This document shows positions 54,593-55,817 of a stretch of DNA of 56,721 nt, in pieces. The notes beneath the pieces were generated by a model. The model was given only the letters and a program-made list of their open reading frames with translations. It made no database searches and had not been told where the DNA came from. The stretch spans positions 62,495,171 through 62,551,891 of the forward strand of contig NC_068992.1 of assembly GCF_001194135.2 (NCBI RefSeq), given 5' to 3'. Within the stretch, counting starts at the first letter, position 1; each line of letters opens with the position of its first letter. A program made the translations under genes and the position numbers. Source of the DNA: Octopus bimaculoides (Eukaryota).

Positions 54593-54702
54593 GAATGGTG
54601 GGATATATGGCTGAAATGGAACCCAAGCGAGTACGCAGGTCTGAAAACCATCGAAGTTCCGGCTGCAGAGATATGGACGCCAGATTTGGTCTTGTTCAAC
54701 AA
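54593..54702 (+). CDS. nAChR loop-A exon, variant B (110 bp): EWWDIWLKWNPSEYAGLKTIEVPAAEIWTPDLVLFN(N)
   Basis: ttcttaacttatggtcttggtaaAG|GAATGG...TTCAACAA|GTAAGT. Exactly 110 nt, same phases as variant A, no stop codon, 20/37 residues identical to variant A, with structural W, D, WNP, VP, W.PD, VL and NN kept. Confidence 0.9.
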
Positions 54703-54969
54703 GTAAGTTGGACGTGTGTTGCCTCTTTTTGCTGGTTATGGTCTCTCTCTCTCTATCTTTCTTCTTAATCTCTTTCTCTTTTATATCTTTGTTTAAACTC
54801 TCTTTTTTTTAACATCACTTAATACGGTACTAATTTTAATCCATCATCTAATTAGATAAAATGGCATCTAAACATTTAACTCTCTCTCTCTTTGTCCTTC
54901 CATGATTTCTATATTTTATCACATTTTCTGGGTTTTGGGGAGGGGTGGGGGGCTTCCTTCACATTGGCC

Positions 54970-55572: not shown

Positions 55573-55817
55573 TCTTCTTCCTCCTCCTTCATCATCATCA
55601 TCGTCTTCTTCTTTTTCTTCTTCTTCTTCTTCTTCTTCTTCTTCTTCTTCTTCTTGTTCTTGTTCTTGTTCTTGTTCTTGTTCTTGTTCTTGTTCTTGTT
55701 CTTGTTCTTCTTGTTCTTCTTGTTCTTGTTCTTGTTCTTCTTCTTCTTCTTCTTCTTCTTCTTCTTGTTCTTCTTCTTCTTCTTCTTCTTCTTCTTCTTC
55801 TTCTTCTTCTTCTTCTT
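55573..55817. repeat. (TTC)n / (TTCTTG)n compound microsatellite
   Basis: Directly visible. It is the source of the spurious poly-E, poly-K and poly-S ORFs. Confidence 0.97.

Follow-up and report, generated by a model that had tools for sequence, protein, structure and literature searches.

Can one nicotinic receptor gene exchange a residue of its agonist-binding site by splicing? The question is raised by a 56,721-nucleotide (nt) stretch of Octopus bimaculoides DNA (contig NC_068992.1, positions 62,495,171 to 62,551,891 of the forward strand; hereafter the window), which carries exons for the extracellular domain of a nicotinic acetylcholine receptor (nAChR) subunit. A first-pass annotation, made from the letters alone, had proposed that the gene offers two variants of the exon that ends in ligand-binding loop A, one with tyrosine and one with phenylalanine at the position of Tyr93 of the muscle alpha1 subunit, and that splicing chooses between them. 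Here we show that RNA joins either variant, exon 4A or exon 4B, to the same flanking exons, and that a bivalve gene holds the same pair in the same order.

A duplicated exon at loop A

Using tblastn with human alpha7, beta2 and alpha1, we located three receptor exons only in the window, all on the + strand. With alpha7, the expectation values inside the window were 2.7e-8 for 4B and 1.2e-5 for 4A, so the likeness of these exons to a receptor is not due to chance. The exons, and the features within and between them, are as follows.

12757..12801, + strand: exon 3, constitutive, 45 nt (DEKNQIMTTNVWLRQ), single copy; cag acceptor, gtgaga donor; the loop-D Trp lies inside
43316..43425, + strand: exon 4A, 110 nt, the version with the canonical loop-A Tyr; phase 0 in, phase 2 out; 36 residues plus (N)
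43418..43420, + strand: TAC codon of the 4A loop-A Tyr, at the muscle alpha1 Tyr93 position in the numbering of the Protein Data Bank (PDB) alignments
43426..54592, + strand: intron from 4A to 4B, 11.2 kb, rich in microsatellites, with six assembly gaps
54593..54702, + strand: exon 4B, 110 nt, EWWDIWLKWNPSEYAGLKTIEVPAAEIWTPDLVLFN(N), frame +2; ag acceptor at 54591-54592, gtaagt donor at 54703
54695..54697, + strand: TTC codon of the 4B loop-A Phe, in place of Tyr93, from the translation of exon 4B

The two alternative exons begin alike, in phase 0 with GAATGG directly after an ag acceptor, and end alike, in phase 2 with AA directly before gtaagt. They share 56% of their nucleotides and 19 of 36 residues (53% at the protein level). 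Of the nucleotide differences, 48 in all, 26 fall at third codon positions, and the two exons write 14 of their 19 identical residues with different codons. This pattern argues that the duplication is old and that purifying selection has acted on both copies. The ligand-binding domain family PF02931 (Neur_chan_LBD) of Pfam matches the A-isoform peptide with 82.9 bits and the B-isoform peptide with 73 bits (cut-off 26). PDB alignments, which pair query residues 1-52 with residues 44-95 of muscle alpha1, place the Tyr/Phe site on residue 93, as the first-pass annotation had it. The polypyrimidine tract of 4B is weaker than that of 4A (53% against 68% pyrimidines). No further receptor exon was detected inside the intron between them by tblastn with human nAChR subunits.

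Transcripts carry one exon or the other

Transcript data were taken from Logan contigs of RNA sequencing runs and from raw reads, the latter covering about 6% of each of runs X67 and X68. RNA contigs span exactly 43314-43425 for 4A, with zero depth on the flanking intron (X32, X49 and X51), and exactly 54591-54702 for 4B (X25, X29, X32, X33, X49 and X50). The two extra matching bases upstream of each exon arise because exon 3, by chance, also ends in AG. For both exons the left overhang is ...AAATTATGACTACAAATGTCTGGCTTAGAC, the end of exon 3, and the right overhang is TGCAGACGGAAATTATGAAGTAACTTTGAT, the start of exon 5, with the exon-3 3′ end AAATTATGACTACAAATGTCTGGCTTAGACAG standing directly before 4A and directly before 4B. 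Across the contigs of seven runs the two exons have the same 5′ and 3′ neighbours, with an identical 30 nt of exon 3 on one side and an identical 30 nt of exon 5 on the other. Beyond either exon, RNA contigs continue with TGCAGACGG..., giving the split codon AA+T = AAT (Asn) and then ADGNYEVTL. Both LYNN and LFNN are therefore real, and the stretch 54593-54702, which had been read as a variant ending in LFNN, is an intact exon whose final Asn is confirmed in RNA.

Exon choice differed strongly between samples, some containing only A, others only or almost only B, and others both, in keeping with the splice control that had been proposed. Both forms were found as 162-nt contigs with the same ends in X32 and X49, where contig depth, a poor measure of expression in Logan data, was 12.7 for A and 23.5 for B in the former and 47.3 for A and 28.4 for B in the latter. 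X50 held 4B in a 162-nt contig (depth 10.1) together with exon-A sequence words. Exon 4B lay within 1.8-kb contigs in X25 and X29, which had no A contig, and within a 1.7-kb contig in X33, whose sole A-region contig is unspliced; X26 and X30 had no A contig, and exon-B sequence words were present in both. Conversely, 4A lay within a 1750-nt contig in X51, which had no B contig, and X52 had exon-A sequence words and no B contig. The raw reads of X67 and X68 numbered 10 and 25 for B against 0 and 2 for A; 7 and 14 of the B reads, 21 in total, cross 54702 into exon 5.

The pre-mRNA is thus spliced as exon 3-4A-exon 5 or as exon 3-4B-exon 5, and the two variants come from one gene, as the first-pass annotation had supposed. 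Conceptual joining of 4A to 4B reads ...LYNKNGGIYG and then stops, the frameshift bringing a stop codon inside 4B. Because 110 nt is not a multiple of three and double inclusion meets this stop, only mRNAs with a single one of the two exons are predicted to encode a receptor.

Two pieces of RNA data run into introns: the X33 contig (43270-43408, depth 3.68), from the intron into 4A, and one raw read of X68, from 4B into the downstream intron (54703-54740). Each is either unspliced pre-mRNA or a DNA trace, and the remaining RNA evidence is cleanly spliced. Neither contigs nor raw reads gave an A-to-G or other difference between RNA and genome in 4A or 4B at the listing threshold, hence no sign of recoding RNA editing in these two exons in these samples.

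The exon pair is shared with a bivalve

With the 36-residue 4B peptide as query, exhaustive searching by HMMER recovered gene models and open reading frames (ORFs) that hold both A-like and B-like copies. The top match was KAJ8305004.1 (P0008), from the bivalve Tegillarca granosa. In the genomic sequence of this species (CM056600.1; L001), exon 2 is followed by an exon 3 whose peptide is identical to that in the window, by 4A at 13050-13159 (LYN) and, 574 nt further on, by 4B at 13734-13843 (EIWTPDIVLFN); both alternative exons are 110 nt long and all borders are ag/gt. The order A then B also occurs in L003 (with near-copies L004 and L005), L006, L008 and L002. Exon 3 and exon 5 are also present in L003 and L006, and exon 5 in L008; L007 and L009 hold B alone.

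The database model KAJ8305004.1 itself strings both alternative exons (L001:13050-13843) into one protein of 137 residues, bringing them back into frame through a 58-nt linker exon (GYLDLAKPEYKLGFYNVNK). The linker is an annotation artefact of a kind typical at mutually exclusive exons, and we flag the merged model as a trap for annotation.

Six A exons and eight B exons were compared. Lys at exon position 6 of A is never found in B; Arg at position 19 of A is Thr, Ile, Asp or Asn in B; Tyr at position 21 of A is Glu, His or Gln in B; and position 35, the loop-A site, is always Tyr in A (6/6) and always Phe in B (8/8). Conservation of the Phe in orthologous B exons, on which the first-pass annotation had staked its proposal, was therefore found throughout. 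The other three positions had been missed, including the most drastic change, from Tyr to Glu at position 21. Conversely, the Trp after EW (giving EWW) and the DIWL motif, to which attention had been drawn, are present at 4B positions 3 and 6, but B exons of other species do not keep them, which makes them lineage-specific.

Between species, A exons are 69-75% and B exons 50-69% identical at the protein level, and A and B of one species are 53-58% identical. As A exons of different species resemble each other more than A resembles B within a species, the duplication is older than these divergences. In eight loci, including that of the bivalve, B keeps W2, D4, W9, P11, Y14, P23, W28, P30, V33, L34 and N36, together with its open frame, its exact length of 110 nt and its splice sites. 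Two close relatives of the window species have 4B and its flanks with one coding change, GAG to GAT (E26D; G to T at 54670), over the 185 bases compared; a second difference occurs in one contig only. Both relatives keep the Phe codon, which speaks against a sequencing error.

These comparisons indicate that the exon pair is older than the divergence between the window organism and bivalves and that both copies have kept their frame and splice sites. The Tyr/Phe difference, kept in the same order in the window organism and in the bivalve, argues that both receptor forms are needed. An echo of the ligand-site remodelling of octopus chemotactile receptors, which had also been suggested, is not supported, because the pair occurs in a bivalve and is far older than the chemotactile receptors of cephalopods. 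A mite contig (L010) carries an A-like exon and ends 574 nt downstream, which makes it uninformative on arthropods.

In other receptor genes (P0018, P0014 and P0038) we observed recent tandem or partial duplicates of the same 110-nt exon, P0018 holding two near-identical copies that read ...VWKPDIVLFNK. This suggests that the 110-nt exon is prone to duplication.

The gene resembles heteromeric alpha subunits

Orthologous loci supply the downstream part of the subunit. L003 encodes, downstream, a Cys-loop, a loop B (GSWTYDG) and a loop C (KHYKRYICCPSPFPDIT) with YICCPSPF. In L008 the Cys-loop reads SSCTMNVEFFPFDEQLC and loop C reads EKYYTCCSEPYPDIT (YYTCCSEPY); a membrane domain follows, matching PF02932 with 210 bits. 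Among PDB entries L008 matches human alpha4 best and then, in this order, alpha3, beta2 and alpha6. The start of exon 5 in the window gene, NADGNYEVTL, closely matches L003 and L008 apart from the split first codon. The gene family thus appears to be an alpha-type subunit of the heteromeric neuronal group, judging by loop C and the PDB matches of the orthologues. The first-pass annotation had made its proposal depend on vicinal cysteines in loop C; L003 and L008 have them, standing as proxies for the window gene, whose own loop C lies outside the window.

At L003:2335-2691 the residue aligned to alpha1 Tyr198 is Phe (YICCPSPFPDIT), and L008 keeps Tyr (YYTCCSEPYPDIT), so that species differ at a second aromatic-box position in this gene family. 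Protein searches with the exon 3+4A and exon 3+4B peptides returned short fragments only and no full-length product of the window gene; a search with orthologue exon 5 returned fragments of at most about 200 residues, mostly arthropod 'alpha-like' subunits.

What the exchange may do to the receptor

We favour, at a probability of about 0.62, the joint reading that 4A and 4B are mutually exclusive tandem duplicates in a heteromeric neuronal alpha-type nAChR gene and that the B isoform is less responsive to acetylcholine (ACh), accessory-like or differently partnered. From its conservation, the exon pair probably has a function. Isoform A would present the canonical principal (+) agonist face. 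In isoform B the aromatic box would be weakened or retuned, the hydroxyl of the Tyr93 equivalent being lost to Phe, and the outward beta2/beta3 face, site of the complementary (-) face and of the subunit interface, would be changed. By alignment, positions 6, 19 and 21 (alpha1 residues 64, 77 and 79) fall on the beta2/beta3 strands, away from loop A, and we take them to face outward toward the complementary side, after alpha7 Thr77/Arg79 and beta2 Lys79/Arg81. Receptors containing B might then show lower ACh sensitivity or efficacy, play an accessory-like role or choose different partners; a lower-sensitivity or accessory-like B subunit is the most likely outcome. The claim that Y93F weakens the response of a receptor agrees with mouse muscle AChR, where alphaY93F reduces the diliganded gating equilibrium constant from 45 to 0.7 (PMC2525745, Table II).

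Exclusivity would be enforced by the reading frame, with nonsense-mediated decay assumed, and by regulated choice of the 3′ splice site. Steric exclusion is not the mechanism, given an A-to-B intron of 350-630 nt in most other loci, about 2.4 kb in L006 and 11 kb in the window. A search for complementary intronic 'docking/selector' pairs in three compact orthologous loci gave only short pairs at chance level. The introns around the alternative exons measure at least 30 kb and 11 kb in the window, and the A-to-B intron 0.35-2.4 kb in the other loci.

Tentatively, we extend this to a broader proposal, possible but doubtful as a whole, of a splice switch older than the split between bivalves and cephalopods, and maybe spiralian-wide, through which one alpha gene gives two forms chosen per cell type: with Tyr, an agonist-binding subunit, and with Phe and a remodelled beta2/beta3 face, an accessory or retuned one. 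If this is true, mutually exclusive splicing achieves here what in vertebrates takes separate genes, alpha on the one hand and alpha5/beta3 on the other.

Several points weigh against the reading we favour. Exon usage is stated per sample and not per tissue, and contig depth measures expression poorly. All contigs seen link A or B directly to exons 3 and 5, but no exhaustive search was made for rare forms that include both exons or skip both. The loop C, Cys-loop and transmembrane exons of the window gene lie beyond the window end (56721) and are known from orthologues. Tyr to Phe is a conservative change that leaves an aromatic ring, and the cage of the nAChR-like receptor Alpo4 uses a Phe, F103. 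Positions 6, 19 and 21 were assigned to the complementary face from alignment and from the literature on other subunits. Finally, B exons evolve faster than A exons, and in a neighbour-joining tree of the 36 residues the A exons group together and the B exons form no resolved group (supports of at most 52%). The argument for a single origin consequently rests on exon order, identity patterns and diagnostic columns.

Alternative explanations

An unlikely but serious alternative accepts the switch and places its main effect on the outward beta2/beta3 face and the main-immunogenic-region loop (positions 6, 19 and 21), where it would alter partner choice, assembly, the (-) site or the binding of extracellular proteins, leaving the Tyr-to-Phe change as a minor passenger. 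The three additional columns are as diagnostic as Tyr/Phe, the replacement of Tyr21 by Glu, His or Gln is chemically far more drastic, and the choice between exons 4 and 4′ of insect alpha4 has been proposed to affect assembly as well as ligand binding (PMC2064938). However, a neutral passenger would not be expected to stay Phe in every B exon and Tyr in every A exon over such a time, and alphaY93F has a strong effect on the gating of muscle AChR (PMC2525745).

It is improbable that the pairs of Tyr-type and Phe-type exons arose by independent, convergent duplications in each lineage and not once. The lack of a supported B clade in the tree would fit such a history, as would the recent duplicates of the same type in unrelated receptor genes, for example P0018, where both copies have Phe, and P0014. 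Against it, A and B within a species are less alike (53-58%) than A exons between species (69-75%), A precedes B in each of the five loci with both exons, and four diagnostic columns are shared.

Still less credible is a 4B that serves as a non-productive 'poison' exon, or is a decaying duplicate, so that its inclusion only down-regulates the gene. Its weaker polypyrimidine tract, its faster divergence and its lower Pfam score (73 against 82.9 bits) would suit such an exon, but B substitutes for A in frame between the same flanking exons, is the sole or dominant form in several runs, and has kept its frame, 110-nt length, splice sites and core residues in eight loci, including that of the bivalve.

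That A and B come from two neighbouring paralogues, or that the assembly duplicated one exon artificially, is highly improbable: the 19 N gaps and the position of the downstream exons beyond the window leave some room for it, but there is one exon 3 only and no receptor exon between A and B, RNA joins both exons to the same 30 nt of exon 3 and of exon 5, 56% nucleotide identity is too low for an assembly duplicate, and the same layout is found in the independent assemblies of other species.

Other content of the window

The window is AT-rich genomic DNA with 19 N gaps and many microsatellites. Outside the three receptor exons we observed only microsatellites, namely (TA)n, (TG)n, (TATC)n and, at 55573-55817, (TCTTCT)n, and N gaps; the long ORFs and tandem repeats elsewhere in the window consist of these alone. 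A candidate for exon 2 at 1252-1302 was rejected, being a weak match (E about 1) without splice sites or reading-frame context.

Comparison with known systems

As mutually exclusive exons in a Cys-loop receptor gene, 4A and 4B represent a known device, and automated isoform annotation in public databases may already hold the pair. Such exons are known to diversify invertebrate Cys-loop receptor genes, the described cases being insect ones at other exons; a full-text literature search found no account of them in cephalopod or mollusc nAChRs, and a paper on the expansion of lophotrochozoan nAChRs does not discuss splicing of these receptor genes. The 4A/4B pair toggles a canonical aromatic-box residue, the Tyr93 equivalent. 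Through it, the contribution of loop A and of the beta2/beta3 face to agonist sensitivity or subunit role can be tested simply and directly in the nervous systems of lophotrochozoans.

Exon 3 of insect alpha6 is the 45-nt exon next to loop D, whereas here the 45-nt exon is single (12757-12801) and the next exon, of 110 nt and encoding loop A, is duplicated. The insect gene is of the alpha7-like type and that of the window of the alpha4-like heteromeric type, and the phylum differs. In both systems part of the extracellular domain of a nicotinic subunit is encoded by tandem-duplicated exons used in a mutually exclusive way, and conservation of the insect exons 3a and 3b (as well as 8a/b/c) spans hundreds of millions of years (PMC1919356, PMC2064938). 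Double inclusion breaks the frame in the conceptual 4A+4B product, whereas insect alpha6 mRNAs with 3a and 3b together remain in frame (PMC1919356). Exons 4 and 4′ of insect alpha4 are likewise a mutually exclusive pair, in a heteromeric-type alpha subunit, and are thought to influence ligand binding and assembly (PMC2064938). Unlike the window pair, they encode loop E and the surroundings of the Cys-loop and involve no swap in the aromatic box. The insect receptors RDL (exons 3 and 6) and GluCl (exon 3) offer a further parallel, as Cys-loop receptors with alternative exons that alter residues near binding loops (see also PMC13512814). Unlike the window gene, they are anion channels gated by GABA or glutamate, and other exons are involved.

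A Phe in loop A is itself familiar from other subunits. Human beta3 has WLPDIVLFEN (PDB 8a5u_B, the best PDB match of both isoforms) and alpha5-like sequences have WTPDIVLFDN. Beta3 and alpha5 are not known to form orthosteric sites, and they are separate genes in which the Phe is fixed, unlike the splice toggle of the window gene. A further case is Alpo4, an orphan nAChR-like receptor of the annelid Alvinella pompejana (PDB 8bx5), whose loop A, IWTPDIVLFNN, is nearly identical to that of 4B and which ranks second among the PDB matches of the B isoform and 25th among those of the A isoform. F103 contributes to the aromatic cage of Alpo4, which does not respond to ACh (PMC10338036). In Alpo4, however, this loop A belongs to a separate, isolated homopentameric gene, whereas in the window gene it comes as a splice isoform.
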